This document shows, one piece after another, positions 20,017-64,000 of a DNA stretch of 64,000 bases. The DNA is from Podarcis bocagei. Taxonomy: Eukaryota. The notes beneath the pieces were generated by a model that saw only the letters and a list, made by a program, of their open reading frames with translations, was not told the origin of the DNA and made no database searches. The translations under genes were made by a program, and so were the position numbers. Position 1 is the first letter of the stretch, and every line of letters begins with the position of its first letter. The stretch lies in assembly GCA_964188305.1 (NCBI GenBank), contig OZ076894.1; one strand, written 5' to 3'.

Positions 20017-21288
20017 AATGAATAAAAACAACATAAAAATCACACATTATATAAAATAGTAAAATCTGACAAAACAATATAGTTTTTAAGAAGTTAACTG
20101 CATGGCAGCAGAGCCTTTCCTACAGCATTTTATTAGCCTGGCTGCCAAAATATGCAGAAAAAGAAGAACGCTGCTTCTTCTACTTTCAACTTCCAATTTG
20201 AAAATTTTGGCAGCTATTCTGGCTTCTGTTATGCTTTCTACAAATCCATTTATGGGTTCTGCTTGGGAGAATTAGCTTTCAGTATACATTCACAATGTTC
20301 TTTGATTCTGAAGCTCTCTCTTTTTTTCTTGTTGGTGCTGCGTCTGTATTCCTGCAAGGATTTTTACTCTGTGCCAAATCATGTTTTGTCTTGCAATATA
20401 TTAACCATTTTGTGTGTGAACAGCCAGACACTATTCAGCCTTAAAGCTACAGCCTTATAGCATGTGACTGCAGCTGAAAACTTGTATGGGGGAGGGAAGA
20501 AAGCATTTGATGACCTTCCTTAAAAGTAAATAACTGATATCAATAAATGAATGGGAATGCTGAAATATAAACTGGTAGTCAGACTTTTTTTTTGGGGGGG
20601 GGAGCTTATCTCAGAAAATTGGTAACCGAAAAAGAAAATTCACAGCTTCTACACATTTCTACTTTTTGAAAGAAATAAGATTGCATTTAGTCATCTGTGA
20701 ATGTTCTGCGGTTTCATTAAGAAGCCCTGAAAGATTCAGCCATCACTCACTCTGAGTTATCTAGATATTTGACATCTCTTGCTGAAAGAAAAAGCATCTC
20801 TAGCCATGGGTAGTAAGACTTGAAGGAATATCAACAAGCCATTTGCCACATGCTTCGCTGGTAACTTACCAACTCTGTATTCATTGACAGTCACCTTATT
20901 CGACTTTCAGATTTGCTAAACTGGGCTGAATAATCAGCTACCATTGTACAAGATTCTGCATTATGGGATGCTGCAAATAATGGTGCTGTGGGACTGGTGC
21001 AGATGATTATGACTGGGGGCGGAATGGGCTAGAAGAGTCAGAAGGCCAAGTCAACTTTCAGTGGTATCTTAAGATTGTTGCAGCACTTGAAGTGCTTTGC
21101 CAAGGTCTGCCCTCCAGTTCCCCAAATTGCTTGAGAAATTCTTTCCCCTACAAAAAGAGAAGCGTCTCTTTTCTGTCTCATTCTCAGGGCACTTTAGAAC
21201 TTATTATAATTTCAGTAGGTGTGGGAGCTTTGAGTTTACTGTATTATTGTGAAGTGGCCAGGTGTGTTTACATTTTTATTTTCCATTA

Positions 21289-21465
21289 CTGTATTTTTTG
21301 CTCTATAAGACTCACTTTTTCCCTCCAAAAAAGTAAGGGGAAATGTGTGTGCTTCTTATGGAGCGAATGCAGGCTGCGCAGCTGTCCCAGAAGCCAGAAC
21401 AGCAAAAGGGATCGCTGCTTTCGCTGTGCAGTGATCCCTCTTGCTGTTCTGGCTTCTGGGATTCA

Positions 21466-21517
<52 letters not shown>

Positions 21518-21574
21518 CCTCAAAAAACTAGGTGCGCCTTATGGTCTGGTGCGTCTTATAGAGTGAAAAATGTG
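21289..21574. mobile_element. pogo/Tc2-like MITE with internal hairpin and (TA)n
   Basis: TIRs ctgtattttttgctctataagac / gtcttatagagtgaaaaatgtg, TA flanks; ~34-bp internal stem at 21385-21461; (TA)n at 21468-21513. Confidence 0.75.
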
Positions 21575-23011: not shown

Positions 23012-23579
23012 TGTGTGAACAGAATGTTTAAACTTAAAACAATTAGATAGCAGAGTTTAAAACACCATCCCTTGCATCATCCCTTGGAAACTTTGGGACT
23101 AGGCTGTGTAGGCTTGTTGCAATTTATCCAGACTACGGTAATTGACTGGATTTCTCCCCGCCCCCTTCCCTCTGAATTAAAAGAATAATGCGACAGACTG
23201 TAGATTAAGCAAAAAATAGTGTTTACTTACATAAAGTATTGCACTTGATTCCGGCAGTAACAGTAGCAAAAAGTAGGCTGGCAACGTTTATTTCTAGATT
23301 ATAAAATACATATTTGAGTTCAAATTGAAGTCTCTGCTTAAGCAGAGATCAAAACAGAAGACCATCTACCTGAGAAGCATGGTGGAAAAGAGACTTGAGT
23401 TCTGAGGCAGGGGGGGAGTATAAAGGGTTAAATCTTTTTGTCTTTTTCCTGCCAGGCAACTCAAGAGAAGTGACATCACACAGTGCCCTCTCTAGTAATC
23501 AGGAACTCTGTGATGTTTAACCCCTTCATATTCTTGTTTAGCAAAACATGCAAAGTTATTTTGACTTCAAATTCACACA
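23012..23579 (-). mobile_element. Possible solo LTR
   Basis: tgtgtgaa...ttcacaca termini and LTR-like composition, but the flanks (catg / ctag) do not form a clean TSD. Confidence 0.3.
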
Positions 23580-26591: not shown

Positions 26592-26727
26592 CAAACATCC
26601 CCAAACTTGGCCCTCCAGATATTTTGAGACTACAGTTCCCATCATCCCTGACCACTGGTCTTGTTATCTAGGGATGATGGGAGTTGTAGTCCCAAAACAT
26701 CTGGAGGGCCAAGTTTGGGGATGCCTG
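26592..26727. mobile_element. Palindromic hAT MITE
   Basis: Nearly the whole element is an inverted repeat; perfect 8-bp TSD ctctagtg (26584-26591, 26728-26735). Confidence 0.88.
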
Positions 26728-26946
26728 CTCTAGTGCAACAGATGGGGAGTCTGGATTCCTCTCTTAAGCAGTAGTGTACAGACCAAGCCCATCTGTTATT
26801 CTCTAGTACCCATTACACCTTGTCAACAGATAGATGTATTGTAGTTAAGGGATTTTTGGCTTTGTTTATAACTGTTGTGGGGTAGAGGGTCAAATTCTAT
26901 CAATAGTGGGACTGAACTGATTAAGTATGATGTAGATAATTGTTTA

Positions 26947-41745: not shown

Positions 41746-43805
41746 GGGGAGGAGAATGGGACCAGCATAGTACAGTAACATAGGAACCAACTCCTAGGGG
41801 CCAAGGGGTCTTCGGAGCCCCAATAAAATATTTGAGGGGGCCTCCCTCTGGCTGTTAATGGTGTGAAGGCTGCCATGAAACAGATTTGCCCAGGACGCTT
41901 CCTACCAGGCTTCCAGCAGAATGAACACAGTCAGCGGCAAAACACGCACAGAATCACCCTGAGTCTGATTGACCAGCAACACAGGAGTGTTCTAGGCAGA
42001 TTACTTTATGGCCCGTAATTCAGCAAATCAGTTGCTATAGGCAGAGATAGTCCTTAATGGCTGTGGATCCCCACAGTAGCACATCGGCTTGCGTCCTCTC
42101 CCCAGATGAAGGACTTCAGAAAGTTGCTCACATAACGCAGTGCGCATGTCAATGCTTTCACTATCTTATCTTGCAGCTGTATATAAAAAAAAATATCCGG
42201 CTTCACAGAGACAGTTTTCTGAAAACAAATGACCAATACCCCCAACAGTTGATGGGCCCTGCCATTCAAATGATGTACATGTACCAGGTCATGTGATCAA
42301 TTATACACAGTGAAGTTTACCTGCCCCATATTTTATTCAAGTAGGCACTCCTGTACAGAGGTGGGGCCCTTATGAACTCATACTTCATATTTGAGGACCT
42401 TTATTCCAATTATGGCTGTCCTGCACCCAGGTGTGCCAACTCTAGGGGGGCAAAGGCACCTCGGCCCCCTCAATATTTGTTTTAAGGGAGCTGGGCTCCC
42501 CCCAAAATGAGGCAGCCCTGTGTGTGTTGTGCATGTGTGACATCACACCCGCAATGTACATTGTGTGTAACGTCACATGTGTGCCATTCGAGTCTGGCTC
42601 CCTCAGTCTTGGGGGCAATCTGCCACCTCTGCCTGCACCTGCCCTCTCATATTCAGCTTTAGGTTTATCCCCCAAAAGCTGACCCACTTCTTTTGGCTGT
42701 TGTTGTGTTTCCCTTTTGAAATGCTTTCTTTGGGAGGTCTTTGAACTGTATTGCTCTCATGTGAGAGAAATGAATCTGATATGTGCTTCCGGATTGGTTG
42801 TGTAATCCCACACAACCCTGTTTATGAAAACCATTGTCTGCTGAGGAGATGAATCAGCGGTGCCAAAATGGGGTACCAAACAGTCCCCCAACAAGTATGG
42901 ATTTTTCAGAAATATAAATTCTGAAGAAGAGAAAACACACTCTAATGGCCAGATGGTTGAATTCAATCTTAAACACACAAATAAACAGTGAAACCCATGG
43001 CATCTCTGTAGTAGGAGCACCATACCATTTCCGAGTGAGCCTATGTACATTTCTACTAAGTTCTGTTAACTTCCCTCCAATTCAGTGTGTATTGGACTGC
43101 CGCCTCAAGTTTTGCATCCAGTGCCTGCTTATTATGCTTAACGTTACTCTTCATCAGACTAGCCTGATTAAAGATGATGTCTTAAACAGTAATATTAGCA
43201 TCATTCAATATTTCCTAGAACTCATTTGTTTCAGCCTGCAGAATAAACTGAAAAAACCTGCCAATCTTCATCTTCCATGGCATCAGAGTTTAAATATGTC
43301 GCAATAAAACAGATTTATTACTCCTTTTAAACTTCAGAAATACAAATGACTGTTTCGTTATTAAAGTTATTGAAGAGAAATATACTTTTCATTTTCCAAA
43401 ACAACGATAAAAGTGCAATTATGAGGGTACACGCTAATACATCTTACTGATTGAAAGCATATTAAATATTTACCTGAACCAGCTGCAAATTTCTCTTCCT
43501 TTATTAAGCTAGATCTCTGTTGACAGCAGTAGTTTTTAACATTTCTATTCTAAGCTCCCCCTGCCATTCCATATTCCTACTGATGAAACTCAAGTCTAGA
43601 ATCCTCTTGTACCCTTTTGGCCACACAAATGGATTATTTGGCCACAACTCTCTAGGCAAGGAGCCAGTCCATTGCTAGGTGGTTCGAGGGTGCGAAGGAC
43701 AATCAGCTATTTGATGTATGAAGGATCATTTACCACATGCATCCCATATATACTCAGGAGGTCATTGTGATCTGTGGGAGACTTTGTCCTTCAAGTTCCT
43801 TCATG

Positions 43806-43870
<65 letters not shown>
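43806..43870. repeat. (AAT)n microsatellite, tail of a short L2-like remnant
   Basis: Direct inspection; followed by ttatatcccacccatct. Confidence 0.9.
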
Positions 43871-44151
43871 TTATATCCCACCCATCTAGGATATTATGAT
43901 TATTTATTGAATTTATATGCCACCCTATACCCAGAGGTCTCAGGGTAATAAATTATAGTTTATTACCTGCCCTTCACTCTAAGGTCCCAGGGCTGGTCAA
44001 AGCAATTTAAAATACAACCTTAAGAACATTTCCCACCCCCCCCCCCAAAAAAAACTTGCACTTGCAAAAAGTACAATCACAGAAATAACATCTAATAAAA
44101 ATAACAAGAGCATCTAATAACCCCCCCCAAAAGTTCACCCATTTGCTTATA

Positions 44152-44377
44152 CAGTGCTACCTCGGGTTAAGTACTTAATTCGTTCCGGAGGTCCGTACTT
44201 AACCTGAAACTGTTCTTAACCTGAAGCACCACTTTAGCTTATGGGGCCTCCTGCTACTGCCATGCCGCCGGAGCACGATTTCTGTTCTCATCCTGAAGCA
44301 AAGTTCTTAACCTGAAGCACTATTTCTGGGTTAGTGGAGTCTGTAACTTGAAGCGTATGTAACCTGAGGTACCACTG
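44152..44377. mobile_element. Tc1/mariner (Tigger-like) MITE
   Basis: TIRs cagtgctacctcgggtta / taacctgaggtaccactg, TA flanks. Confidence 0.88.
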
Positions 44378-45034
44378 TATTTAGAGTTCCAGTCTTTCTG
44401 TGTTAGAAATCTTCAAGGCCATTTTCTAAAGAGTGATTGCTTTTCCCATTTCATGATATGCATCTAGTAAGGCATCCTCTGGTACGGTTTTAAAGTCCAA
44501 CTGTTGTCTGAAAGTGGGAAGCCTGATCTAGAGCAATTAGGAAGATTCCTGGCCTGCAGGCTCATAATCGAAGGAAGACACACAGCCATGTGTACTTGAA
44601 GATTTGAGTTGTGGATATATTTAGGTATAGCTTTGTATTTTCAGTTCAGTTTTATAATCATAAGTTAGCAGGGGAGGGATTTCCTATATTTTGATACTCG
44701 CACTGGGTTAAGTGCCAGCTTGCCCTGCTGAACGAAGAGGTCTCGGTCATGGGTGCCTAACTGTTATTGTTATTTTAAAATTTTACTGTTTTCTGTGGTT
44801 TTTCTTCACTTTTTAAGCTGTTTTAAATCCCATTTTGCAATCACCTTGTGACATATATGGAAGGTGATTCCTAAATAAATTGATGATAATGGGGATATCC
44901 TGGCTGGTTTGTATCACACGCGTCCCTAAGAGTTTGCTATTCTACAGAACGTTGGCTGTCAAATATTCCTCATTCCTCTTAATTGCACCCCTACAAGGTC
45001 ATCCATCCACAAAAAAGGTTGGGTGTGTGTTCTG

Positions 45035-45036
<2 letters not shown>

Positions 45037-45094
<58 letters not shown>

Positions 45095-45304
45095 TTATTT
45101 ATACCCTGCCCATCTGGCTGGGCTTCCCCAGCCACTCTGGGCGGCTTCCAAAAGAATATTAAAATACTATAATACATCAAACATTAAAAGCTTCCCGAAA
45201 CAGGGCTGCCTTCAGATGTCTTCTAAAAGCCTGGTAGTTGTTGTTCTCTTTGACATCTGGTGGGAGGGTGTTCCACAGGGAAGGCGCCACTACTGAGAAG
45301 GCCC
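45037..45304 (-). mobile_element. L2-clade LINE 3' fragment with (AAT)n tail
   Basis: Near-identical to 32241-32534. Confidence 0.85.
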
Positions 45305-46172
45305 TATACAAAAATATACAAAAAGCACATTCCTCTCAGAAATTATGCCTCATACAAAACTAATGTCTAAGGCGGTAGGCCTTGCTCTTTCCCCAATACT
45401 CTTGATGGTCTTTACTGGGTGTAAATGAATTTATTTTCATAATGGCACTGCTCAAGTAACATTTCCTTGTCTGTCACACGCCCTAGGCTTTATTTGGACG
45501 AGCATGTACATTGTGTGCCTTGTGTGTTTGACGGAATGTTGTCTGACTTGCTGAACTAGGAGCCTGGGAAGGTTGCCATCCCACGGATATACTACTAATA
45601 TCATGGGGGGGGGGCATCTTAAAATGAAGCCAAGCACTATGCAACAAGTGCCCGTAATAGTTAAAAATTACTAGGTCAGCCAGGAAGTGCACCTGTAGCC
45701 AAATAAAAATCAGAACCATTTGCTGTGTTCTGTGAAAACTTCCTTGAGGGATTGATTAGGAAAGCGCTTGCAACAACCCTGTAGCACAGCCAGCAGAGGT
45801 GATGATTTTCTAATAAGTAGAGTAGCTCAGGGGCAGCCTTTATGACACCAATTACTGTGGTGTTCGGTGACTCATTGGTGCACTGTAGCTTGTTAAGTGT
45901 GTCAGCTCATGTGTTACTTAGCTTCCAGGAAGCTGGAGAGAACCAGATCCCTGCATTGGCTAAGTCATGCTAGATTGGTAACATATTCACTCAAGTCAAT
46001 ATTTTTCAAACTTTGTATATTCTGCGGACACTCTCTTTCTTAACACAGGCCCAAAACTACAAGTGATGGTGAGTAAGGTGACTTTCTTTTAGTGCCTGAC
46101 CTGTCCATATATAAAATTTGAATGGTGGGGCAGGGCTTGTTTTAACAGAAAATGGAACATGCGAAATGAAGG

Positions 46173-46997
46173 TTGCGCGTCGAGGTCCCCAAGCCACCCC
46201 AAATAACTCACACCTCACACAGAAATTTTTGTTTAAGGTTTTTTTGGCATAGCTTTTGGCCACAACTTTATTTAAATACAAAAAATGTGAGTGGTTGCTT
46301 AGGCATTGGTTGCGACTATCTGCTCCCGGTGGGGACAGACTGACATTTCGCAAGCCTGCGAAAGCCAGAAAAGGGGAATACATTTTGGGGATAGCGACGG
46401 AGCAGGGAACCTGCCCTCAGCCCTCCCCAAAAGCAACCAGGGGCTCTTGCGTGGCCCTAGCCCCTTGACAGGGTTTGGACAAAAGCAATGGTGAGCCCCT
46501 GTATTCCTTTAACAGAATACCCTTGCAACAGCAGCATTAGAGGGGCAGGCACAGCCAATCCATGCCCCTCAACCAACCAAACCAAAAACCAATGCCTAAC
46601 TGCAAACTTACAAGTTGTGACAATTTGCTACGCAGTAGGCAAAACCCAAATGGCACCAGCCAATCAGCCAAATGGACAAAATTCCTACCGGGATCCTGCC
46701 CCAAAAGCAGACGAACCCATGACAGACATAGCAAGGTCAATGCGAATAACCCTAAATATAGGGAGGGGGGACGGGCAATCCGATGCATGGAGTGAAAAAA
46801 GGAAGCTTTTGACTTCATGCAGGGAGTTTTAAGGTTTCAAGCTGTCAATCACAAAACGGCAACGTTAACTTCTTCCCAACAACAAGGGAAGCCCAATCAC
46901 AACAGTGGCCAATGATCAATTAGCCCGCCCCACAATTTTGGAGTGTCTTGTCGGTCCCCACCGCAACCCATGCTCTCCGTGAAGGAGAACACGCTTT
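46173..46997 (-). mobile_element. Non-coding structured element, copy A (probable DIRS/Ngaro-type tyrosine-recombinase retroelement repeat)
   Basis: Colinear with 56544-57388 end to end (aaagc...tggggacctcgac.cgcaa); no TSD beyond a shared AA; no TG..CA ends and no tail; aataaagttgtggcc near the 3' end. The family assignment is inference. Confidence 0.7.
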
Positions 46998-48840
46998 CTG
47001 TATCTCTTTCCCCATCCCAACATATTGCCTCCCCTCAGTCTAAGGTTCTAAGCACTTGCTTCTCGTTCTTGCTCACTTTTGATACTGGGGCTGGGAAGTG
47101 TTAGAAAACCAGGAAGAACCAAAAGTAAGGTGGTAAGGCATGAAACGAGGGAAGGTTCAGAATCCATCTCAGGTGTTTATTTTACTGTTGTAATAAGAGC
47201 TCCTCCATCCCTCCACCTCTTTATGTCTGACTGGAAAGATGCATGAATTGCAGCCCTTTGCCTTATTTACTGAGAAAGGGTTGTGGCTTCTGGGGTATGG
47301 CAGGCAATACTGTGACATATTTTGGATACTTGAGGAAATTGATTCCTGTGAATTCCAGTGCATACTGACCTAACCCACACCTCCCAGGGCAATGTACAGA
47401 TTGGAGTGTAATTAAACTTCAGATTTCACATTTCCCCAAAATTAGTCTTGCAGTTCTTGGCAAGTTTAGGATGGAGTATGTTTGTTAATGAGTACGTTGA
47501 AATAAAACATGTACATACGTAATGTGTAATAAGATAAGTATTTAAGTAAAAAGAATTGTGCATTTTTTTAAAAAAATGCAGATAATACACAAACACGACA
47601 GAACATAGTTATGAATGTGCAAATTGACACATGCAAGATGTGATTGATCTTTCCCTAGTTGTAAGGCACAATATGCTTACAGGATCAAATATAATTGATT
47701 ATAGTATGCACATTTTTCTTAGATGTCACACTGAATTTTAGGTTTTAAAAGTCCTCATGGAAATTGTTATTTAAATACTGTACCTACTTTATGACAAATT
47801 GTGTATTTTTAATGATTCCAACCATTTTTTCTTTCTACTATTCCATGAGAGTTGTTACCTTTTCCTTTGTGTACTGAATTATTGAATACATAATAGGCAA
47901 ATTAAGAGATAGGCATTACTGCTGCTGCATCTTGAATTCTACTCAGCGGCAAGAGGGCAAATTGATGATGTTGTATATTTTCTTCTTGGAGCTGACAGAA
48001 CACTGGAGTTTTGTGCCGCAGCACCCATTCCATGAATGAGTACCTGTAGATGCTTAAAGGTATTGGAAACAAATTGGAATCTGTAAGTCTCACCTGTTAG
48101 ATGAGACCCAGTTCTTAGTGCAGTTGATTTATACAACAGCAAGGATGCAGTATATGATGTTAGGAGATGAAAATATAACCATAAATTTGAACTCAATTTT
48201 GCAAGCTACTCAGGGTTTATTGCAGTAGAGATTCAGGAGCATGATTTGATATGCATGTATAGGCAGGACATTTATTTGCTTGTTTGCTAGTTTGCATTAC
48301 TCTGCAACCTTGAACTATAGTAAACAGGCCATCTGGAAATCCTAACTTATATATGGAGCCGTACGTTGCTGCCATACACTAGAGGGGCCCTGTGCTCCCA
48401 GTTGCATGCCCAGGGTTTTCCATGGACCTTTCCTAGTGTGCTGTATCTGACCAAATTAGGTTGCCAACCCTTGAAAGACAAAATGGTTTTAGTAACTTCA
48501 CTCCAGCTAGGTCAAAATCACAAAGCATGAACTAAAAATGCACAACTTACAGCTATTCTGTAACCATGGACAATTGGAATCCATGATTTGCAGATGCAAG
48601 AAAATTTGGATGAGTGGAGCAACTGAGCCTCAACTAGTTAGGTCAGTGTGGCTCTTGTTCACTATATTCTCCAACTGGCATGCCTTTCTGTCTTCCTTCA
48701 CTGCTACCTGCAGTCAAAAGGGATGTAGTGACTCTGTGACAACCAAGGCAAGGATGAGCAGTAGAGTACAACTAAGCATGGTGTGGTACAACTGGCCACT
48801 TGAATCTCATGGCGTCTCAGGAATTCTCTTACCTTGTTCC

Positions 48841-48875
<35 letters not shown>
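48841..48875. repeat. (TTGA)n microsatellite
   Basis: Direct inspection. Confidence 0.95.
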
Positions 48876-48876
<1 letters not shown>

Positions 48877-48997
48877 ATTCTATGCTGCTGTATCCATTCA
48901 GAAGAATCCCAAAGCAGGTTACAGACAACAAGTAGCATTAACACAAAAAACACAAGCACAGCACAAATCATATGATTGATTATGGGTGTATGGAGTG

Positions 48998-49425
48998 CAG
49001 TGCTGGATTTACGTATAAGCTAAACAAGCTTTAGCTTAAGGTCCCACTCTCTTGCCCCCCCCCCCAATAAAAAGAAAAAAACTGGATGTATATTTCCAAA
49101 ATATAAGATTAAAAAAACAAATAAAATAAAATAAAACCTACATACAGCAACAGTGTGTTGTGTTGTGTTGTGTAGGCTCCTATGATGTAAGTAATGGGCC
49201 CTACACATAGCTGTCAACGTTTCCCTTTTTTTAAGGGAAATTCCTTTATTCCAAATAGGATTCCTCGCAAGAAAAGGGAAAAGTTGAAAGCTATGGCCCC
49301 ACATATTGCATATATTCAACACAAAAAACAGCGACAATCTGTTGTTGGCAAAAGACAGCTGGACATATAAAGGGCCCCATTACCTTCAGTAGCTTAGGGC
49401 CTCATCAAACCTAAATCCGACCCTG
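48998..49425. mobile_element. hAT non-autonomous element (family of 16556)
   Basis: TIRs cagtgctggattta / taaatccgaccctg; TSD atggagtg / atggggtg. Confidence 0.88.
49206..49295. mobile_element. 90-bp hAT MITE nested in the larger hAT element
   Basis: Reverse-orientation copy of 33247-33336; TSD gccctaca / gccccaca. Confidence 0.85.
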
Positions 49426-49433
49426 ATGGGGTG

Positions 49434-49768
49434 TTAGGAAAAGGGTGGTACCTCTCATGGAAGACATCTCATGCTCCTTCTGAGGTAGTTTATCCACCTT
49501 TGGTCCCCACCCTGCACTCAGCGTTCACCTGTGAGTCTCAGAAGCTGTTAGCATATGACAGTGGCCACACCCTGGGAAATGGCTTCAACTGGCTGAGGGG
49601 AGCCAATGGGGCTCAAACCCTTGGTGAGTTAGGGACTTCCACTGCATGCGAAGACAGGCTCTTGTGGATTGAGTGGATTAGACCCATAGGGAGTCCAACC
49701 ACCAAGAAGGTGGTTACTGCAAGTGCTGTAGAGGGAAGTAATGGGGCTCGTCAACCTGGGAAAGTTAA
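49434..49768 (+). mobile_element. Possible RTE-clade LINE 5' UTR fragment
   Basis: Ends in atggggctcgtcaacctgggaa, which resembles squamate RTE 5' UTRs as I recall them; no coding evidence. Confidence 0.3.
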
Positions 49769-49937
49769 CTGTATTAACTTGGTGGTTCAAGTATCAATTT
49801 AACAAATACCTGATTAAAAACTAGAAAAAGGGGAGCCCTAAATCCTGCGTCCCATATGAAACTCCCTCCCCTCTAGTTCCGGCCTCTAATGAGTTCTCAG
49901 CACGGATTAATGACATTTGGAGAGGGGTGGTTGTAGT

Positions 49938-50298
49938 GGGTGGCACTGTGGTGTAAACCACTGAGCCTTGGGCTTGCTGATCGGAAGGTCAGCGGTTCAA
50001 ATCCCCGCGATGGGATGAGCTCCCGTTGTTCGGTCCCAGCTCCTGCCAACCTAGCAGTTCAAAAGCACATCAAAGTGCAAGTAGATAAATAGGTACCACC
50101 CTGGTGGGAAGGTAAACGGCGTTTCCATGCGCTGCTCTGGTTTTGCCAGAAGCAGCTTAGTCATGCTGGCCACATGACCCGGAAAAACTGTCTGCAGACA
50201 AACGTTGGCTCCCTCGGCTAGTAAAGCGAGACGAGCGCCGCAACCCTAGAGTCATTTGCAACTGGACTTAACTGTCAGGGGTCCTTTACCTTTACCTT
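49938..50298 (+). mobile_element. Sauria SINE
   Basis: Consensus match, (ACCTTT)n tail, short TSD gttgtag. Confidence 0.92.
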
Positions 50299-50380
50299 TT
50301 AGTTGTAGCTAGCTGCTGCCACCGTGTCACTTGTTATTTAATAAATTATCACTTTTAGAGTTCCTGTGTATGTTTTGCTT

Positions 50381-50623
50381 GAGAGCCAGCGTGGTGTAGT
50401 GGTTAAGAGCAGTGGACTCGTAATCTGGTGAACCGGGTTCGCTTCCCTGCTCTTCCACATGCAGCTGCTGGGTGACCTTGGGCTAGTCACACTTCTCTGA
50501 AGCCTCTCAGTCTCACTCACCTCACAGGGTGTTTGTTGTAGGGGAGGAAGGGAAAGGAGATTGTTAGTTGCTTTGAGATTCCTTAAGGGGAGTGAAAGGC
50601 GGGGTATCAAGTCCAAACTCCTC

Positions 50624-50685
<62 letters not shown>

Positions 50686-50686
50686 A
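50381..50686 (+). mobile_element. tRNA-derived SINE (Squam3-like) with (TTG)n tail
   Basis: Box A tggtgtagtgg, box B ggttcgcttcc, CORE-like gtgaccttgggctagtcac...cctcacaggg, L2-like 3' end; (TTG)n at 50624-50685. Confidence 0.82.
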
Positions 50687-51605
50687 TATAGTGGTGGCCT
50701 GCTGGGTTGGGTCTCCCTTTTGTTGCAACTTGCTCTCAGATCAATACAATGAAAAACATATTTGATAATATTTTAAAATATTATGCATTTGATTAAGACA
50801 TCCATTGGAAGCAATATAAATGCATGGAATAAAAGTATGCATATTTACCTGCTGAGAGGATCATTTTTCACCACTGCCTCTAGCACCATAAGTCTAGTGC
50901 AAGTCAGATTTGATAACTTCCCATGGAGCTTTTCACTTTCTTATCACTGTGAACGTTGCACACAGAGATAGTTGGATGCTATCCAATGGCATGGATGGAA
51001 CTGTGCATTCATTTGCTGTGACAGTCGACAAAGACTGTTAACATGTGCAAAGTTCAGGATGTGTTGATGCCTCACATGTGACTGTTTTAGACTTCAGGCA
51101 TTACAAACCAGTCCAACCAGTGGCTGCTACAGTCGAGGCAGATGTGAGACTCAGTCATGAACCACCCAATCAAAACATTACAATGTAACAAGGGGAAATC
51201 ATAGGAACAACATTCTCAAGTTTCATCTTTGCCCACTTATAGTATAAAGTCTAAAATAAAGCTCAGCAAAAAGAGAAGAGCCCTCTCCATTTTGCAGACA
51301 CATCTGTAGGGCTGGCACTGTAAGTGCTACTTAACTGTCCAAGATGGAGGCTTACTGAAAGTAGTAGCCAAAATGCATCTTTTTTTCTTGTGTTTTGAAG
51401 TTTACTTTCTCCCGCCTCTGCTTACAAGATGCAACATTGGTTTCCCCCAACCACTTAGAGAACAATGCTACATTGTGATGTACCATCATGCCAGAATATG
51501 GTTGGAAAAAAGTGATGTCATTTACACTAGGCTTCTCTCCCACTCCCATGTTATTCTCTCCTGCAGGTGGCTTGTGGTTTTGACTTTGCTTTTTACCCAT
51601 CCCTA

Positions 51606-51819
51606 CATCAAAGTGCAAGTAGATAAATAGGTAGCGCTCTGGCGGGAAGGTAAACAGCGTTTCCGTGTGCTGCTCTGCTTCGCCAGAAGCGGCTTAGTCA
51701 TGCTGGCCACATGACCCAGAAGCTGTACACTGGCTCCCACAGCCAGTAAAGCAAGATGAGCCCCAGAGTCGGTCATAACTGGACCTAATGGTCAGGGGTC
51801 CCTTTACCTTTACCTTTAC
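51606..51819 (+). mobile_element. Sauria SINE, 3' half
   Basis: catcaaagtgcaagtagataaatagg...(ACCTTT)n. Confidence 0.88.
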
Positions 51820-52426
51820 CCAAAACAAATTTGGAGAAAGGGACTAACAACAACAACAAGATTTGGATCATCACTAGTCCAAATTGACTCAGACCTTACC
51901 CACAGTGAGTGAGTTCCAGAAATCTAGGGGCCCCCGGAAATCTTGATGCCAACTCTGGACGCTAAAGCAGAAGTGAGGAAAAGAGAAAGGGAATTTCATT
52001 GCACCTTTACCCTCCACGCATCTTTGTTCCATTTGAAGCTGCTCTCTAAGTAGATTACTTCAACAAAACCAAACAAGGTAGTGTCCATACCCCTTTCTGA
52101 TAAGCTTTATTTGATTTGAAGGCTGTAAGCTGCAGAAATGAGCTGGCTTTGAAGACTCGTGACACTTTACATTTTGAAATGTATAAATCAAAAGCAGCTT
52201 TGTATCCATTTTTTAACATATCAAATGCTGAGTTGGCTTTGCCCCATAAATAATTAATACCACAAAGCATTTAAGAACCCAGATGATGAATGGCACTTGG
52301 CAGTAATAATGCATTGCTTTTTTGGGAGCCAAGCATACTTTTAGTCAAAGAGAGGAGAAGAAGCATCATTTGATTGACTGATGAAGAATCGAACCACAAG
52401 CTACCATCACACAGATGCCTTGGCTT

Positions 52427-52557
52427 CAGGGCTTTTTCCTCCCAGCTGGAACTTGCTGGAACTTAGTTCCAGCACCTCTCAGGTGGGTGCCATTGCCATA
52501 ATAAGAGAACAATTTGTGGTGAGTTCCGGCACCTATTTTTCTAGAAAAATAACGCTG
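52427..52557. mobile_element. Short hAT MITE
   Basis: cagggcttttt / aaaaataacgctg termini; 8-bp flanks cttggctt / cttggctc. Confidence 0.75.
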
Positions 52558-53179
52558 CTTGGCTCTTTCTTGAACTGAGCATTTGGCTGTGGTCAGAGCA
52601 GATCACTGCAGTGGGATCCAAGCCCCTTCCCATCCCCAGCCAGGTAGGTTGCAGCATTCATGGTATCAGGAGAGCAGCTCCACCTCCATCACACTGGCCA
52701 TTACTGTTGCGAACCACAGGGCACCTGCTTGCCCCTAGGCTTTTCCCCATTCTTTTTGTCACCACATGGCTGTGCTCTTTTATAGACCCCCTTCCTTTCC
52801 AGGCACAAACTTGTAAGCTCAGAGAGCTATTTCCTCAACAGCATCAAGCTGTGATGCTGCAGCTAGCCAGCCCCTTAAGAAACACTTCTCTCAGGTGAGC
52901 AAAAGGGAAAGTTATGCTCTGCCAAAGCACTGTATCCTCCCGTAGCCATCTACAAATGGAGATTTTCTTCCAACATTTAAGAGCCAACTGTTTTAATTCA
53001 GGGGAGAGGGCAGAGGTAAATGACAGTGGAAATAAAGAGCTGAGTGAGAAGTTTGATTTAAAATATAGGTGTATTTCCATATGTTTTCAAACATCCGGTT
53101 TTGATAGGAGCAAACAGAAATCCTGTCTTACATGTTTCAGGAAAGACATTTTTAGAGGACCGTATGTGAGACCATTATT

Positions 53180-53543
53180 GGGACGCGGGTGGCGCTGTGG
53201 TCTAAACCACAGAGCCTAGGGCTTGCCAATCAGAAGGTCAGAGGTTCGAATCCCTGCTACAGGGTAAGCTCCCGTTGCTCGGTCCCAGCTCCTGCCCACG
53301 TAGCAGTTCAAAAGCACATCAAGTACAAGTAAATAAATAGGTACCGCTCTGGCAGGAAGGTAAACGGCGTTTCCATGCGCTGCTCTGGTTTGCCAGAAGT
53401 GGCTTAGTCATGCTGTCCACATGACCCAGAAGCTGTCTGCAGACAAACGCTGGCTCCCTTGGCCTATAGCGCAAGTTGAGCACCCAACCCCAGAGTCATC
53501 TGCGACTGGACCTAACGGTCGGCGTACCTTTACCTTTACCTTT
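53180..53543 (+). mobile_element. Sauria SINE, full length
   Basis: Consensus match; 15-bp TSD tatg(t/c)gagaccatta. Confidence 0.93.
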
Positions 53544-54355
53544 ATGCGAGACCATTAGCTCTCTTTTCCCTCTTGGAACTGCCTTTTTTCGCTCCAGCAA
53601 TACAGGGAACCAATAGCCTTGGTGTTGGACTTGTAACAAGGAGACCTATGTTTGAACAGAGATTTCACAATGGTGTTCGATAGTGAGCAACCTCAACTTA
53701 CTTACATTATTCTAATAAGAATAAATCAGGAGAAATAAGTTTCAGATATGGTACCCTGAGCTACTGAGACAGAAAGCGAGGAATAAGTTTGCCCTGAAAT
53801 CCTCCGTCACTCAGTACGAATACAGCATCATTGATACAAGTTTAGCAATAACTGAACCTGTTGATTAAGGGTTACAACACCTCCCAAAGCACTTCTTATC
53901 TGAGTGTAGTTCTTGAGTGATACATCATTAGTGCATCTTCCCAAAGTGTATTGCAGGGTTGAATTTTTGAGAAAGAAGATGCTTGAGAACTCTTATTTTC
54001 CAAGTATGTATTTTATTTAACTGTCTGGATTTTTATTGCAAAACTATTGAATGCTAACATTAAAGTGTCATCTCCATTGTCTGCCATCTACAAAAGCTCT
54101 TTCCTCAGTTGATTTGTCAGTCTTTATAGCAGAGGACTTTCATTTCTTTATCTGTTTTGAAAGATTTTTTATCCTGTTTTTTTCTGGCCCCAAGGCAAAG
54201 GCAAAGTTGATTCTCATTTCAAACACACATTCACACACACAATTTAACCCAATGAAAACAGAACATAAAAATCACAACACAAATGTATAGAACCAGTGAA
54301 ACCCACATAGGAAAACAAGCCTGGTTAAATAAATATAAAGGCTTGAAAGTAAATA

Positions 54356-54586
54356 CAGTGGTACCTCAGGTTAAGTACTTAATTCGTTCCGGAGGTCCGT
54401 ACTTAACCTGAAACTGTTCTTAACCTGAAGCACCACTTTAGGCGCTTTAATGGGGCCTCCTGCTGCTGCCGCACCGCTGGAGCCCAATTTCTGCTCTTAT
54501 CCTGAAGCAAAGTTCTTAACCTGAAGCACTATTTCTGGGTTAGTGGAGTGTGTAACCTGAAGCGTATGTAACCCAAGGTACCACTG
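54356..54586. mobile_element. Tc1/mariner (Tigger-like) MITE
   Basis: TIRs cagtggtacctcaggtta / taacccaaggtaccactg, TA flanks. Confidence 0.88.
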
Positions 54587-54999
54587 TAATGTGGTTGCCT
54601 CCCAAATCAAACTACCAACTAGTAAGTTTGTCTAAGAGCTATGACCTCTATATCCAAAACAGGCTATTATTCCCTTATTGTTGTTTGCAATATAACCATG
54701 CAAAACATTTTCTGCTTCTGCAGGGAAGCAGGGAGGAGGGGTTAATGTGTGAGCCTCCTAATTTCACCTTAGCTCATGAGCATTTGGCTCATAAAGAGAT
54801 GGACTATTCCACTCTCATCTGCAGGTGTAGGGATTATTCTGTTAGGAAGGCTGAAAGGACTAGGTAGCGCAGGAGGGACAGTTAATCCCTTTACGAATTC
54901 TGAGCATCTTTATTCTGATGGAATATGATAATAATGCTGAAATTACTATGGTGCATAATAGATCTATTGCCTGCTATATGCTGCATGTTTAAATTAATT

Positions 55000-57960
55000 T
55001 CATCTGCACTAACTTGGAACGTAAATGAGTACTCCAATTAAAATTAATATCAAACTTAAAATACGAAGGGTATGGTCTACCCAGATAACCCAGACCTTAC
55101 TTTTTAAATAAAAGACATACTTTAAAAAGAAAAAGAAACACAACACTGATACATATCCCTTCCTCCTGAAACAAGGTGGAGATTGGTACACCTCACAAGG
55201 TACTTGCAAAACTAGGGAGTCAGCAACCTGGATTTCTCCTAAACTTGATTTTCAATTAAAAGATGCACTAAGTGACCCTAATGGAAGATTTATCTTCTTC
55301 AAAGGACTGTTAGATAACTCCTGGCTGACATTATGCTCTGTTTATGTACCTAATACCCAACAAGAACAATTTCTAGATGAAGCTTTTACATTACTGCACT
55401 CATTTAAACAAGGCGAAGTGGTGATAAGTGGTAACTTTAATCTTGTACTTAATGATTATTTTGATAGAAGCAGAACATCTCACCTGTTGCAAAACCCACG
55501 CAAACCACCCACTTTTAAAGCATCCTTATACAACATATTACATTAACACAATTACTTTTATGCTTGGTGCTTAGCCAATACAGAACTAATAAACCATACA
55601 CATATGTCAGCAAGGTACAAAAATTATGCCAGTTTGTATTATTATTCACAACTCAGAAATTTGTCTTCTTAATATCTTGGGCCATGCCCCTGTTAACAGC
55701 TAAACCTTTCTATTGGATATTTTTAAAAATATGATTTAAAATGTTCTGAATTATTTGGGGGGGGAGACATTTTATCAATATGATGTTGATCTATTCCTTC
55801 CTAACCCTGAAACCTCATTATCTGCTGTTATGCATCAACTTGTTATATCTGGCAAGATATCTGGGTTCACCATTAACTTCAGCAAATGTGGGTTGATTCA
55901 CTCCTCTAAAATTACAACTGCATTGACACAAAACAACTGGCCTAAAACACTGTAATACCTCCTTTAACTAACAGAGTGAATATATCTTAGAATCTATCTA
56001 AACTAGAAAAATTGAACCTTAAACCCCTGATAAAAGATTTAACAACTAAGCTCAAAAATTGGTCAAAACTAACATACTCATAGTTAGTCAGAGTGTCTAA
56101 AATAAAAATGATGCTATTGTCATACCTTCTTTACTTATTCAGAGTCTTACCAATAAGCATACCCATCTCTCAAGTTAATAATTACCAAAAGCTACTAAAT
56201 TTTATTCATGCCAACAAGAGACCTTGGCTATCTCATAAAACCCAAGAAACAATGAGGTAGAGTGATACCAAACCTAAAATGGTATAAAGACTCTGCTCAC
56301 TTCCAGAATATCATTTTGATTTTACTTCTAAACTAAACACAAGCCCCTTGCAGCACCAGAAATAAATTTTATATTGGGCTATACCATGTGGCTGGTTAGA
56401 GATACACCAGATTTTACATTTTCTAAATAAGCCAAATATAAGGATTCAAGTACTACACAGTTTAAATAGTTTTAGGCAACTACTCAACTCAACTAACCCA
56501 CCGGGGAAAGGAATAATCTCCCAACTATCTAAAATTCTCACACAAAGCATATTCTCCATCACGGAGAGCACGTGTTGCGGTTGGGGATTCCAAGACACCT
56601 TGCTGTTTCTGGGCAGATGGTTTGGCCAACTCGTAAGCAGGGGCGGGCTGTTACTGGGGAAAATTACATGTTGCCATTTAGTGATTGACAGCCCTATTTG
56701 GTAAATACAAGGCACGCAGCAACGGACGTCCTCTTTCGCTGCGTGCTTCGGATCAACCGCCCTCCCTTCCCTAATGTTAGGCTGTTTGCTTGACCTTGCT
56801 ATTGCCTGTCATGGGGTCGTCTGCTTTGGGGCAGGGGCCCGGTAGGAATTTTGCCATTTGGCTGATTAGTGTGTGCCACTTGGTTTTCACCTACCGCGTA
56901 GCAAATCATCACAACTTGTAAGGTTTGCGGTTAGGCATTGGTCTGGAATTGGTTGCTGGGGGGTATGGATTCGGCTGTGCCTGCCCCCCAAAATGCTGCT
57001 GCTGGTGGAGGGGTATGGATTCGGCTGTGCCTGCTGCTCCAAAATGCTGCTGCTGCTGCTGAAGGGTTTTACCGTTAAAGGAACCCAGGGGCTCTCCCAT
57101 GCTGTTGTCCGAAACCCCCTGGCAAGGGGCTAGGGCCACGCAAGCCCCTGGGAGCATGCTGGGGAGAGGTGAGTCTCCCCAGGTGACTTACCCTTCCTGA
57201 CTTTGCGGGGGGTGCAAATGTCAGAGCTGTCCCCATGCGGGGGCAGTTAGTGCTACCAATGCCTAAGCAACCACTCACATTGCTGTATTTGAATAAAGTT
57301 GTGGCCAAAATTATGCCAAAAAAATTAAACAAAAATTAAGTGTCAATTGTGTTTTCCTTTGGGGTGTATTGGGGACCTCGACACGCAATTAGCTATCCTT
57401 CCTCTCACTTTATTAAGACTTAAAATGGGGAAAAGATTTTGGAGAAGAACTAGAGGAACAACTCTGGGAAATAATTTGGAATAATCTACCATTTGCATCC
57501 ATCTTAATTAGAACATGAGAAGATGCTTTAAACATAGCACATCACTGGCACATGTGCCCAACCAGAGTATGCAGAATTAATCCTAACACATCCAAACTTT
57601 GCTGGCAGGAATGCAATTTTCCTGGCTCTCAAGTACACATGGTGATTTCCCCCCAAACTCAAAAAAGTTATGAAACAATTGATCAGACCCCAAATTAGCC
57701 CCCCTATCTTATTTTAATTCTTGGTGTAAGAACATAGCCAATAAAGACCTCATCCTCCATTTATTAACTGCAGTGATTGCAAAAAATAAATAAATGGAAA
57801 ACTTTAAATGCAAATCTTTTTGAAGCCTGGATTTCAGAAGTATGGAACATTTTGCTTCTGGACAAATTAACCATTTCACAAAATGAATATTGATCTGGAA
57901 AGGGAAAGACTCAAATCTTCTACATGACATGTTATCCTTTTATTTATTTAGTTAAGACAA
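55000..57960 (+). pseudogene. Heavily degenerate L1-clade ORF2 remnants, interrupted by the structured element
   Basis: Endonuclease-like DPNGRFI, VYVPN and GNFN; RT-like SGFTINFSK; A/C-rich L1 composition; many stops and deletions. Ends are approximate. Confidence 0.6.
56544..57388 (+). mobile_element. Non-coding structured element, copy B (probable DIRS/Ngaro-type repeat)
   Basis: GC-rich insert in the AT-rich L1; homologous to 46173-46997; GC box 56641-56648, TATA-like taaata 56702-56707, AATAAA 57292-57297. Confidence 0.7.
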
Positions 57961-59539
57961 TCAAACATGGTTTTCACCCTTCATTGACTCATGGATAGAC
58001 ACTTTAATTTGATTGCCTTTCTCGGAATGTCTAAAACTACAACCATCAGCTGGTGTTTTTTCTGTATAACTACTAAACTCTGTTTTCCTTGTATGAGCAG
58101 GTTTTGTTACTTGAAATTTAAAATCAATTTCAGAAAGTGCTTGCAACAAGTTTGCCCAAACAGGCAAAAATGGGAGGTGAGTTTTGGAGCATGAACTCAT
58201 ACGCAAAGGAGACATAATTTAGCCTCATCCGTTTTCCACAACCCCTGCAGGTTGGCAGGTCCCAGGTTATGCTTCCATAACATGATCCTTACAGTATTTT
58301 TTGGGCTAAGCTCTTAAACTCTCAATTACCACTTTTTAACTAGATATCTTCTTTTTTTTCTGAAAAGTATTTTACGTTTGCTAATAAAGTTTTGTATTAC
58401 AATTGTGAATTATGTCACATGGTGACATACACAAGCACTACAAATTGTATGTAGCTTGTTTCTTTGTTGGCAGTTGGATTAACCCACCCTATGACATGAT
58501 CATAATGCCCTTTAATAATCTCACTACATGCCCACTGTCTGTTGTGTTTTTCTCCAACAGCTGCTATCTTAATTTTTGGAGTATACGCACTGCTAACGCA
58601 CCATCAGCCAGTTCTTCACTCTCCAGGACTTTGCTTAAGCCATTTGCTAAAAAGCATATAATCAAACAGACCTTTAATGCAGTAATCCATCAGGCAAAGC
58701 CTGCAGATGAAGAAATGGCTGGAAAGAGAAAAGTCTTGCATGTCATATAATCATCACCATAGGGTGACTCTCAGAATGTCTAATGGCATAAAGCTGGAAG
58801 TACAAATAACACTATTTAAGTCTGCAACCCTTAAACCACTCACTCCATACTAGATGACTGCAAGATTTCAGCCCATATACTTTCACCTTTGTTTCAGTTA
58901 AAAAGAGAGACTTCAATAAAATATACATACCGAACCTAACAACTTGTATTTTGCCTGAAACAGCTAATTCAGCAAAGATGACTCTTCCTCACACTTTAAA
59001 TAGTCGTTTGTAGAAGAGAAAACAGCAGTTTGAGGTGAGCCAGGAGTTGAGAGATGAAGCCACAAGTCAGGGTCAAACAGCTACCCAACTGCTTAGGCAA
59101 GCTATGATATTTTCTATCATGTTGTCTTTAAAAAGCTGGGCAGATTTTCATTAGATAGGGTACCTGCAGGTAATATGTAAGCTAGATGCACATAGAACTG
59201 GGAGGAGATATGCTGTTACTAAATCATTGTTGTGTGGAGGAAGGATGGAATTCAAGGAAACCCAACGACAAACTTTCATTAATGCTCTCCCCTCGCACAT
59301 TGTGAAGTCCATGTAATTGGGTTTGATTGCAATAGTAAAAAGGAGAAGAGAGAGAAATAAGGGGGTAACAGAAAAAGAAAATGGGGTGTTCATGATCATC
59401 AGGGCTGCAAAGCATCAAACTCAGCCCTCTACAAACACCAACAATCAGGGCTTGCAAAGCGCCACATAGGGTGCTATGTATAGGGGTTTGCTAGCACCTG
59501 AAAACCTGTTTTTGGCACAGCTGTGTCTTTATCTGCTCC

Positions 59540-61726: not shown

Positions 61727-62268
61727 GCCTATGTATGTTCCCTGTGTTGGCTCCATTGGGTGATATCCAATTCTATACTCAGGGCAGACCCCTTGAAATC
61801 CATGGCCTCATTCTGGATATGATTTCACCCATCAAGAATCCTCAATTTATTCTCTGCTTATTCTTCTTCTTTCGGTAAGTGAGCCCACTGTATAGATCTC
61901 AAGTTTTGTTTCTTTCGGGATGAAATGCAAATGTTATAGTGTAGTAGATCCAACGCCATTTCCTTGATTTAATAAATCACCTACACTTTTGTGAAAAAGC
62001 ATTAGCGTCATCAACTTTCAAGACAAACATTAGTAACAAATGCTTAATCTTAATAATGTCACAATGGAAAGTGATTATTTTAACTGATTACTTCTGAGTT
62101 GGGAGAGAATGTTATATCAAACTTGACAAATGCAAATTTTTACTTCTCGAGAAGAGTTTAATCAGTTTAATGTGTCATTAAATTAACTGGCATTCCTCAA
62201 TACCCCAATGCAGCCACTGAAAGTCAGTCTGCTCATTCACCCAAAGCCCTGATATATTCAAAGTTAAG

Positions 62269-63021
62269 CTAAGATTGTTTTGGTAAAGGGAGTTGTATGA
62301 ACTTCTGAAGCTTCTGTAACAGAAAAATTTGCTTCTCATCTGTGAAAAGACAATCAATGTTAGCATCATGCATATTTTTAACCTTGTCACAAAACTCCTG
62401 AAACTTTTCTAAAGTTTCTTGTGGTTTCTCCATCAAATACACCCAAGAATAATTAGTGAAACAATCCACACACAAAAGGTAATATTTTGCATTGCCCCTA
62501 GATGGTTCTAGAGGACCAATCACATCAGCATACACCCGCTGAAATGCTCTGTCGACCTTCGGCACCTTCCGGGCGCTCTTGGTCACACCTGCAAGAGAGA
62601 TTACGTTAGAATCAGAAGAATTACATTTCATGTAATCACTTTGATCAAAAGTCAACAAATACAGTCCATCTTTCTCTTTGGCAGTAAGAAACAGTTCTCC
62701 ATCTTTGTAGATCTTGCAGCTTTTAGCATCATAGGACAGTTTCAGTCCTTTCTTTGCAATCTGCGACACGCTCAGCAGATTAAATTTCAGTTCTGGAACC
62801 AGGTAAACATCGCTTATAGTCAAGTTCAGACTCTCAAGATACACAGTCCCAATTCCAGTCGCTTCCAACTCTTGACCGTTGGCCTGTTTCACAGTGAAGC
62901 TTTGCTTCTTCAACGTCGAAAACAGTTCTCTGTGCGGGCATAAATGTTTTGTACACCCAGTGTCGATTATGAAGGCGTGGTTCCTTTCGCCATCATAGCC
63001 TTTGCAGGTTTCACCTGGCAC
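62269..63021 (-). pseudogene. pol: Copia pol fragment: aspartic protease plus partial integrase
   Basis: FIIDTGCTKHL (protease active site), VYLVPELKFNLLSVSQI, GLY, YADVIGP, YYLLCVDCFTNYSWVYLM; in the -1 frame relative to gag; similarity ends near 62295. Confidence 0.85.
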
Positions 63022-64000
63022 TTGGTACGGCTTTTGCCTGACGCCTCAGGCTTCGTAGAGCTGCTCTTTGCTCCTTTTGACTGTCGCGGCTTCTTACAGT
63101 TTCGCTGTAGATGCCCAGTCTGTCCACAATTGTAGCATCGGACAGCACTCAATGCTACACCATGCTCTCCAGTAGCACCATCAGTGGGGGAATTCGAACT
63201 CTGTTCTACCCTCCCCCTGTCCTTCACTTCCAGTGCAGCAAGTCTGTCGTGTTCGTTCAGGACCACAGCACACACTCTTTCCGCGGTTAGCTGAGCGGCA
63301 GGTAGGGAACCAAGCTGACTGGCAACAACCTTATAGGTGCGATTAAGGCTGTTTATCATCATGAAGCAAAACACTTCCTCCTGTAGACGGAAATTGCGTT
63401 CCACCATCTGTTGACGCAGAAACTTCATTTCTGTCAGGTGCGCTTGAACATCTCCATCAGGCGCAAGTCTCAGATTGGTCAACTTCTCAAAGTACAGCAA
63501 CGCTGAAGAACCAGCATCTCTCTGATGCGTTGTACGCAGCGTGTCCCAAACCTCTTTCGCATTTTCTAAATGCTGGATATGCACCAATTGCTGATCTGAG
63601 ACACACAGAATTATAGCAGTCCTGGCCCTCACGTTCTGTGATTCCCAACCTCCGGTTGGTGCTGCAGGGATGGGGTTTTCAATTACATCAAAAAGCCTCC
63701 GATTCTGCAGCAGGGCCTTCATCTTTACAGACCAAGATGAATAATTGTCATTGGTTAAGGGAGGTGGGTAAGGCAAACCTCCCCCTTTCTTGGCATCCAT
63801 CTTGAAGCCAAGCCTCTAACTCACACTGTCAAACAAGCTGTAAAATCCAACAGTTGTTTTTACCTTTCTCAGTCAGGCAGGCTGCAAGCTGTTTATGCTT
63901 TTAGCACCTGGCAGCTTGACGCTAGCTGCTATGGAAAGTCCCTTCCAAGAGCACGTAAACTTTGTAGCCAAAACATTCCGTGGCTTTGTTTCGCTTTCCC
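62295..64000 (-). mobile_element. Ty1/copia LTR retrotransposon, internal 5' part (3'-truncated; 5' LTR presumably beyond the window)
   Basis: Domain order gag - protease - integrase with no RT before the integrase, diagnostic of copia. Confidence 0.9.
62967..63800 (-). CDS. gag: Copia Gag (277 aa) with CCHC zinc knuckle
   Basis: LTNDNYSSWSVKMKALL, AKEVWDTLR (UBN2-type gag), CYNCGQTGHLQRNC. Confidence 0.88.
   Translation of the reverse strand: MDAKKGGGLPYPPPLTNDNYSSWSVKMKALLQNRRLFDVIENPIPAAPTGGWESQNVRARTAIILCVSDQQLVHIQHLENAKEVWDTLRTTHQRDAGSSALLYFEKLTNLRLAPDGDVQAHLTEMKFLRQQMVERNFRLQEEVFCFMMINSLNRTYKVVASQLGSLPAAQLTAERVCAVVLNEHDRLAALEVKDRGRVEQSSNSPTDGATGEHGVALSAVRCYNCGQTGHLQRNCKKPRQSKGAKSSSTKPEASGKSRTKCQVKPAKAMMAKGTTPS

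Follow-up and report, generated by a model that had tools for sequence, protein, structure and literature searches.

A 64,000-nucleotide stretch of the Podarcis bocagei genome (contig OZ076894.1 of assembly GCA_964188305.1; hereafter the window; GC content 41.7%) holds two diverged copies, A and B, of a gene-less repeat unit, of which copy B was inserted precisely, with one and the same trinucleotide on either side and no target-site duplication (TSD). Taken as a whole, and with about even chances of being right, the reading put forward here is that both copies are dead relics, namely solo terminal units of ~0.83 kb resembling long terminal repeats (LTRs), of a retrotransposon family that integrates by tyrosine recombinase (YR) and belongs to the DIRS order, and that a conserved hairpin domain and a long-range stem (helix 3) of the unit act in the 3' untranslated region (UTR) of the element RNA, the hairpins enclosed by this stem being a tolerated expansion. 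Judging by its junctions, the family is probably of the Ngaro type. The two copies are delimited as follows.

56546-57388, plus strand: copy B, an 843-bp LTR-like unit without an open reading frame (ORF), delimited by alignment to copy A and by empty paralogous sites that join 56545 to the homologue of 57389.
46173-46996, minus strand: copy A, a diverged copy from a different subfamily of the same unit, delimited by alignment and profile comparison with copy B.

The copies are colinear, with an identity of 72-73% by blastn and of ~77% when non-gap columns are counted (205 differences in 782 aligned columns), and their flanking DNA is unrelated. The longest ORFs within them (86-114 aa) lie in differing frames and none is held in common; a protein search with the spurious 114-aa ORF of copy A gave no match and exact database look-ups of two ORFs from the copies returned no record. 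The initial annotation had described a mobile element present as two diverged colinear copies without a shared ORF, and these data bear out the colinearity, the divergence and the lack of a shared ORF and support the view of a mobile element without coding capacity. Searches of the window with nhmmer --max and with a covariance model of the Y domain (described below) recovered copies A and B only; a 14-bit hit at 23395-23510 was discarded as an unrelated hairpin. Pattern scans of viral contigs produced no match to the unit, and a scan of metagenomes gave four 20-nt chance matches only, with no similarity beyond them.

The evidence on integration comes from DNA contigs that span the insertion point. 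Copy B interrupts the sequence ...ACAA^TT...; the filled site has CAA on either end of the unit and the empty site a single CAA, as seen in three paralogous sites, and no longer duplication is found at the contig joints. One joint runs from 56542 to 57386 with three letters fitting on either side, and two further joints hold 31-35 intervening letters that are colinear with 57389-57420. The boundary of copy B is free to slide by up to 3 nt, CAA being common to the unit and its target. Empty sites could be recovered because the DNA that hosts copy B (56300-56545 and 57389-57700) is itself a moderate repeat (summed contig depth ~140-720 vs ~26-40 for single-copy contigs), and contigs from other copies of these flanks lack the insert. 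The unit begins and ends as (CAA)AGC...GCGCAA, without TG..CA termini, and the junctions of copy A read GAA on the left and CAA on the right, so that two of the three letters agree. Two features define the junction.

56543-56545, plus strand: target-side CAA, the putative crossover trinucleotide, from the joint 56542 to 57386 with its three shared letters.
57386-57388, plus strand: element-side terminal CAA, from the contig joints, kept in copy A.

This signature matches the one published for the DIRS order. DIRS1-like and Ngaro-like elements belong to this order of YR retrotransposons (Goodwin and Poulter 2004; PMC3266345, PMC9210276, PMC7192593), and their integration recombines a 3-bp junction with an identical genomic trinucleotide without TSD, leaving the element flanked by the same trinucleotide, one copy of which is derived from the target (PMC3266345, PMC7192593). 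The group is abundant in lizards, with 775 DIRS1-like sequences reported for Anolis (PMC3266345). Copy B shares with these elements the precise insertion without target duplication, a trinucleotide that recurs at its two ends and stands once in the empty site, and the presence of non-coding terminal repeat modules, in agreement with the DIRS/Ngaro-like carrier that had been proposed for the structure. Elements of the order carry reverse transcriptase (RT), RNase H and YR genes, whereas copies A and B have no attached genes; DIRS1-like elements are reported to use NTT, whereas the trinucleotide here is CAA (TTG on the other strand). An inverted-repeat search found no inverted terminal repeats between the two ends of the unit, so it is not a miniature DIRS1-like element. 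Ngaro-like elements display split direct repeats (A1...B1-A2-B2) around their ORFs, a layout that would show in a full-length copy; the window holds solo units only. The clean integration signature, with CAA, no duplication and empty sites obtained from paralogues, is a useful result in its own right.

The conservation of the family was assessed over 56300-57700 by mapping, at 80% likeness, a DNA run, two raw RNA runs and a contig set that is possibly RNA. The family is present in very high copy, as the summed contig depth reaches 1e5-6e5 in three blocks (vs the ~26-40 of single-copy contigs) and 7e3-2.5e4 in the stretches between them.

56546-56585, plus strand: conserved 5' terminal block of 40 nt (family depth peak in bin 56535-56581).
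56770-56957, plus strand: conserved block 2, the best-kept upstream block of the family (summed depth 1e5-2.9e5).
57240-57380, plus strand: conserved block 3, with AATAAA at 57292-57297, CA sites at 57306 and 57317, an A-rich tract at 57307-57335 and a GU-rich stretch at 57338-57362.

In the 5' terminal block RNAalifold predicts a hairpin (tctcc 56553-57 with ggaga 56563-67) followed by TTGCGG, able to pair with the 3' terminal CGCAA. Within block 2, mean column identity between the copies is 93% over 56790-56945. The highest depth (6e5, bin 57287-57333) makes the AATAAA block the most conserved part of the family, and AATAAAGTTGTGGCCAAAA in block 3 is identical between copies A and B. The AATAAA at 57292, pointed out previously, is conserved in both copies, followed by CA at +10 and +20, the A-rich tract and the GU-rich stretch, a canonical layout suggesting that it is a poly(A) signal; past the likely cleavage site the unit continues for ~70 nt, in the manner of a U5. 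The TATA-like box at 56702, named earlier as the other bound of the structure, is not kept in copy A, and a transcript defined by a TATA box is not supported.

All eight helices described in the initial annotation were located in copies A and B, with their strings and positions confirmed, and an inverted-repeat tool independently finds helices 1, 3, 5 and 6. The following features are relevant to the proposed structure.

56712-56746, plus strand: helix 1, a hairpin of 9 bp within the variable U3-like part (string check and inverted-repeat tool).
56796-56904, plus strand: Y-shaped domain of two hairpins closed by ttgcta/tagcaa, the outer part of helix 2 (RNAalifold; z -2.7 in B).
56840-56896, plus strand: 57-nt hairpin, the second arm of the Y domain (helix 2; single-strand folding).
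56931-56942, plus strand: 5' arm of helix 3, a 12-bp long-range stem, with an inverted CCAAT box inside (inverted-repeat tool, 100% complementary).
57255-57266, plus strand: 3' arm of helix 3, with a CCAAT box 36 nt upstream of AATAAA (inverted-repeat tool).
56943-57254, plus strand: fast-evolving multi-hairpin domain inside helix 3, holding helices 4-8 (family depth 10-40x below that of the flanking blocks).

The 57-nt hairpin has a 7-bp G+C-rich lower stem, which an internal loop (AAUUUU/UUUCA) separates from the upper stem, and folds alike in B (z -4.2) and in A (z -2.4); position 56840 is C>T in 78% of the family depth, giving a U-G pair with 56896, and in copy A and many family members the hairpin loop holds an inverted CCAAT box (CTGATTGG). 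Helix 3 is perfect over 12 nt with its arms 312 nt apart in B, and over 13 nt with its arms 275 nt apart in A; by our arithmetic, ~0.02 perfect inverted repeats of 12-13 nt are expected by chance in 845 nt, and one is present in each copy. Reads from other subfamilies lose likeness right after 56942 and regain it at 57255, that is, at the inner edges of helix 3, and the consensus of the loose ends before 57255 still contains a hairpin like helix 8 with a different loop. The variable domain of copy B also bears a 50-bp tandem duplication of its own (56960-57055; Tandem Repeats Finder, 1.9 copies, 93% match), in which a gggggg/cccccc hairpin has G-C in the first copy where the second copy and copy A have A-T.

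The 600-nt region and its stem-enclosed core fold better than dinucleotide-shuffled controls (z -3.0 to -5.8), equally on both strands, a comparison that had been set out in advance as a possible refutation of the structure and did not refute it; the 5' sub-part alone is weaker (z -1.1 to -2.2). Background windows of 330 nt from the same DNA reach z<=-3 in 6% of cases, and the region is thus unusually, but not uniquely, self-complementary. Two background windows with extreme values, 21201-21530 (z -11.0) and 26601-26930 (z -8.6), are probably long inverted repeats of the miniature inverted-repeat transposable element (MITE) type.

Whether the shared helices covary was evaluated by three controls. 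Against column-shuffled alignments (the core on its plus strand only), the consensus energy lies at z -3.2 to -6.2 and the structure conservation index at z ~2-3, a signal which mostly says that the ancestor was already palindromic. In the second control, the minimum free energy (MFE) structure predicted for each copy was imposed on its counterpart and the observed substitutions were re-dealt within 40-column blocks; pair retention was only sometimes above the null (P 0.0005-0.5, varying with the direction and the strand), and double compensatory changes were at chance in 11 of 12 comparisons (5-7 observed vs 4.3-5.7 expected over the whole region), the exception being the 5' part on the minus strand with the A structure tested in B (5 observed vs 1.1). 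The third control re-dealt the substitutions within 40-column blocks in a CpG-aware manner and re-ran RNAalifold each time. The consensus energy was -175.5 vs -147±8 and -149±7 in the null (P 0.017 and 0.000) and invariant pairs numbered 145 vs 132-135 (P 0.03), while compensatory pairs amounted to 10 vs 17±3, a comparison of low power as it draws on two sequences only. Because energy is below the null and invariant pairs are above it, and compensatory pairs are not, the signal is preservation of stems and not compensation. The covariation proposed earlier is not supported, either by this count or by the MFE-based doubles. The related proposal of structural selection survives in part: shared helices are kept better than under random placement of substitutions (P about 0-0.02), but what is observed is strand-symmetric conservation rather than covariation, and a constraint at the DNA level is equally possible.

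The individual helices that had been presented as compensated lead to the same point. Helix 1 of copy A contains two C-G to T-A pairs and one double mismatch. At the pair 56715/56743 both changes are CpG transitions, which removes it as an instance of compensation; at 56720/56738 the C-G to T-A change is present, with the 3' change at a CpG and the 5' change not. Helix 4 pairs in copy A in a register shifted by two and is not a compensated version of the helix in B. The paired C-G insertion ascribed to helix 7 is really a C-G pair of the family majority (57204 is T>C in 87% of the family depth, 57216 is A>G in 99%) which copy B lost by decay of CpG to TpG on one arm and of CpG to CpA on the other. 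CpG columns change between A and B at 0.43 vs 0.25 elsewhere, and a palindromic CpG that decays on both arms remains complementary half the time, by a count of the four outcomes. Template switching during replication of hairpins is a further neutral source of matched changes. A caution follows for methylated vertebrate genomes, where a palindrome whose CpGs decay on both arms looks as if it had been compensated; the "covariation" that RNAalifold reports is greater on randomized substitutions than on the real A/B pair.

According to the proposal made at the outset, the unit would stand at the 3' end of the full element, so that the hairpin-rich stretch would form the 3' UTR of the genomic RNA, just upstream of the poly(A) signal. 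[quoted passage not shown] Helix 3, if formed, would loop out ~310 nt of variable hairpins and leave the conserved domain ~70 nt from the poly(A) site; in that case the variable hairpins may be read as a tolerated expansion segment and not as a precisely selected fold. ENEs, exemplified by Kaposi's sarcoma-associated herpesvirus PAN, MALAT1 and plant and fungal transposons, are stability elements that clamp poly(A) in a triple helix; they are stem-loops whose internal loop is rich in U and borders on G-C pairs, and they occur in plant, fungal and a few other transposons (PMC7583470, PMC12501189). The 57-nt hairpin resembles them in its U tracts on both strands of the internal loop, in the G-C-containing stems beside it and in its place within a retrotransposon, with a poly(A) signal and an A-rich tract lying downstream; a triple helix is hypothetical, and unlike an ENE the hairpin lies ~395 nt from AAUAAA unless helix 3 forms. 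As in the U3-R-U5 of retroviruses and LTR elements, a single repeat combines promoter-like motifs with a poly(A) signal and a short tail, and in the RexRE of human T-cell leukemia virus a long-range stem brings functional parts effectively closer together, as helix 3 may do, although RexRE bridges the poly(A) signal and the cleavage site whereas helix 3 lies upstream of AAUAAA.

The more specific claim that an ENE-like hairpin protects the RNA of a vertebrate YR retrotransposon family, with the 12-bp long-range stem excluding a hypervariable domain and holding the hairpin at the poly(A) site, is regarded as unlikely. Such a modular 3' UTR architecture would have no described counterpart among DIRS/Ngaro elements or animal transposons at large. 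If the 3' UTR interpretation were true, lizard YR retrotransposons would join the plant and fungal elements that use poly(A)-clamping RNA structures, and the stem-bounded variable domain would represent a tidy case of modular evolution in a retroelement UTR.

Several observations weigh against the 3' UTR proposal and the DIRS-order assignment joined to it. No RT or recombinase gene adjoins copy A or B, the placement in the Ngaro type being drawn from the junction signature and not from attached genes. The folding z values are equal on both strands and do not favor RNA over DNA, the conservation signal is likewise equal on both, and compensatory changes do not exceed chance. RNA reads are few, run in both directions, fall on the conserved blocks only and derive from other family members; 93-97% of them continue into unlike sequence, and no transcript starts or ends were seen over 56300-57700. 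With respect to the hairpins, the MFE structure of copy A for the Y domain differs from that of copy B, the 57-nt hairpin has four U's per side where PAN has five, its lower stem is set apart from the U tracts by AA/CA whereas in ENEs these are adjacent to the G-C stem, and it gave no match in a scan of Rfam 15 (E<=1, covering 45000-58500).

The same scan detected no family inside the unit beyond SNORA44 noise on the minus strand (21 bits vs a cut-off of 55). Self-cleaving ribozymes, comprising the hammerhead of Penelope-like elements and retrozymes and HDV-like forms, had no covariance-model match, and the ribozyme suggested as one possible function is not supported. Outside the unit, the segment 52406-52480 (plus strand) matches the bacterial small RNA family SorX over its full length with 32.7 bits vs a cut-off of 46.6 (E 1e-4), which in lizard DNA is almost certainly chance or a repeat hairpin.

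Among the alternatives, a constraint acting on DNA, with incidental hairpins, is the main and a serious rival, though less likely than the reading above. Under it, the conserved blocks would serve an LTR-like unit as promoter/enhancer and as poly(A) or core-promoter module, helix 3 would owe its arms to a single CCAAT-box (NF-Y-type) site present as two inverted copies, and the palindromes would have been inherited from the family ancestor and be decaying neutrally in dead copies. The strand symmetry of every fold signal, the compensatory pairs at or below chance and the fact that the clearest compensations are CpG decay on both arms agree with this explanation, as does the enrichment of CCAAT/ATTGG (6 in A, P=0.006; 4 in B, P=0.08; 1.6 expected); each arm of helix 3 has the motif, and so has the 57-nt hairpin in its loop. 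The CCAAT at 57256, 36 nt upstream of AATAAA, shows a promoter-like spacing, and AATAAA could equally be a TATA-like box. What such a constraint accommodates poorly is that the complementarity of helix 3 extends over 12-13 nt, longer than the 5-nt core, that the edges of the conserved blocks match the inner ends of helix 3 on both sides, and that substitutions avoid shared pairs beyond random placement in 40-column blocks. [quoted passage not shown] The ICR is essential in DIRS-1 (PMC7192593), which provides a precedent, strand-symmetric stability suits DNA, and RNAalifold pairs 56575-56585 with 57377-57388 beside the 5' terminal hairpin in both copies, the best partner of the 3' end being the same site in A and B. 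Nevertheless, the pairing energy is no better than with shuffled interiors (P=0.075 in B, 0.9 in A), so that the end pairing was rejected as a supported feature; moreover, the middle of the would-be splint mismatches the junction and the explanation covers the termini only, leaving the 600-nt region unexplained.

That the unit is an ordinary solo LTR of an integrase-type LTR retrotransposon or endogenous retrovirus appears very improbable. Its LTR-like size, its poly(A) signal with a GU-rich tail, its CCAAT boxes and its high copy number would all be expected of one, and a Copia fragment is present in the same window; yet retroviral LTRs end in TG..CA and are flanked by a 4-6-bp duplication, and the unit lacks these termini and has at most 3 shared junction bases in place of the duplication. 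The Copia fragment lies on the other strand, 4.8 kb off, and has no sequence in common with the unit, by which the possibility that the unit is the LTR of this fragment was rejected. Least credible of all is that 56931-57266 represents an old nested element with terminal inverted repeats (a MITE), helix 3 being its terminal repeat: a perfect 12-bp inverted repeat does bound a hairpin-rich segment of 336 bp and a TA is readable as its duplication, but other subfamilies keep both arms together with a homologous, faster-diverging interior, no copy precisely lacking the segment was seen and nhmmer finds no free-standing copy of the segment in the window.

Other repeats were detected in the window. 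The Copia-type LTR retrotransposon fragment occupies 62178-63800 on the minus strand, where a gag part matching Retrotran_gag_2 and a zinc knuckle is followed by a Pol beta-barrel domain, pol being broken off below ~62180. Two copies of a squamate-type short interspersed element (SINE), 44149-44379 and 54353-54588, are 91-98% identical and lie in direct orientation 10.2 kb apart; they start with ATACAGTG.TACCTC.GGTTAAGTAC. Three related repeats with a CCTTTACCTTTACC tail (49938-50299, 51611-51816 and 53187-53543; families D2, D4, D5 and D8), spaced by 1.5-1.7 kb, probably represent another SINE-like family. Finally, two (AAT)n microsatellites, at 43800-43876 and 45036-45094, are found ~1.2 kb apart, each followed by TTTAT.

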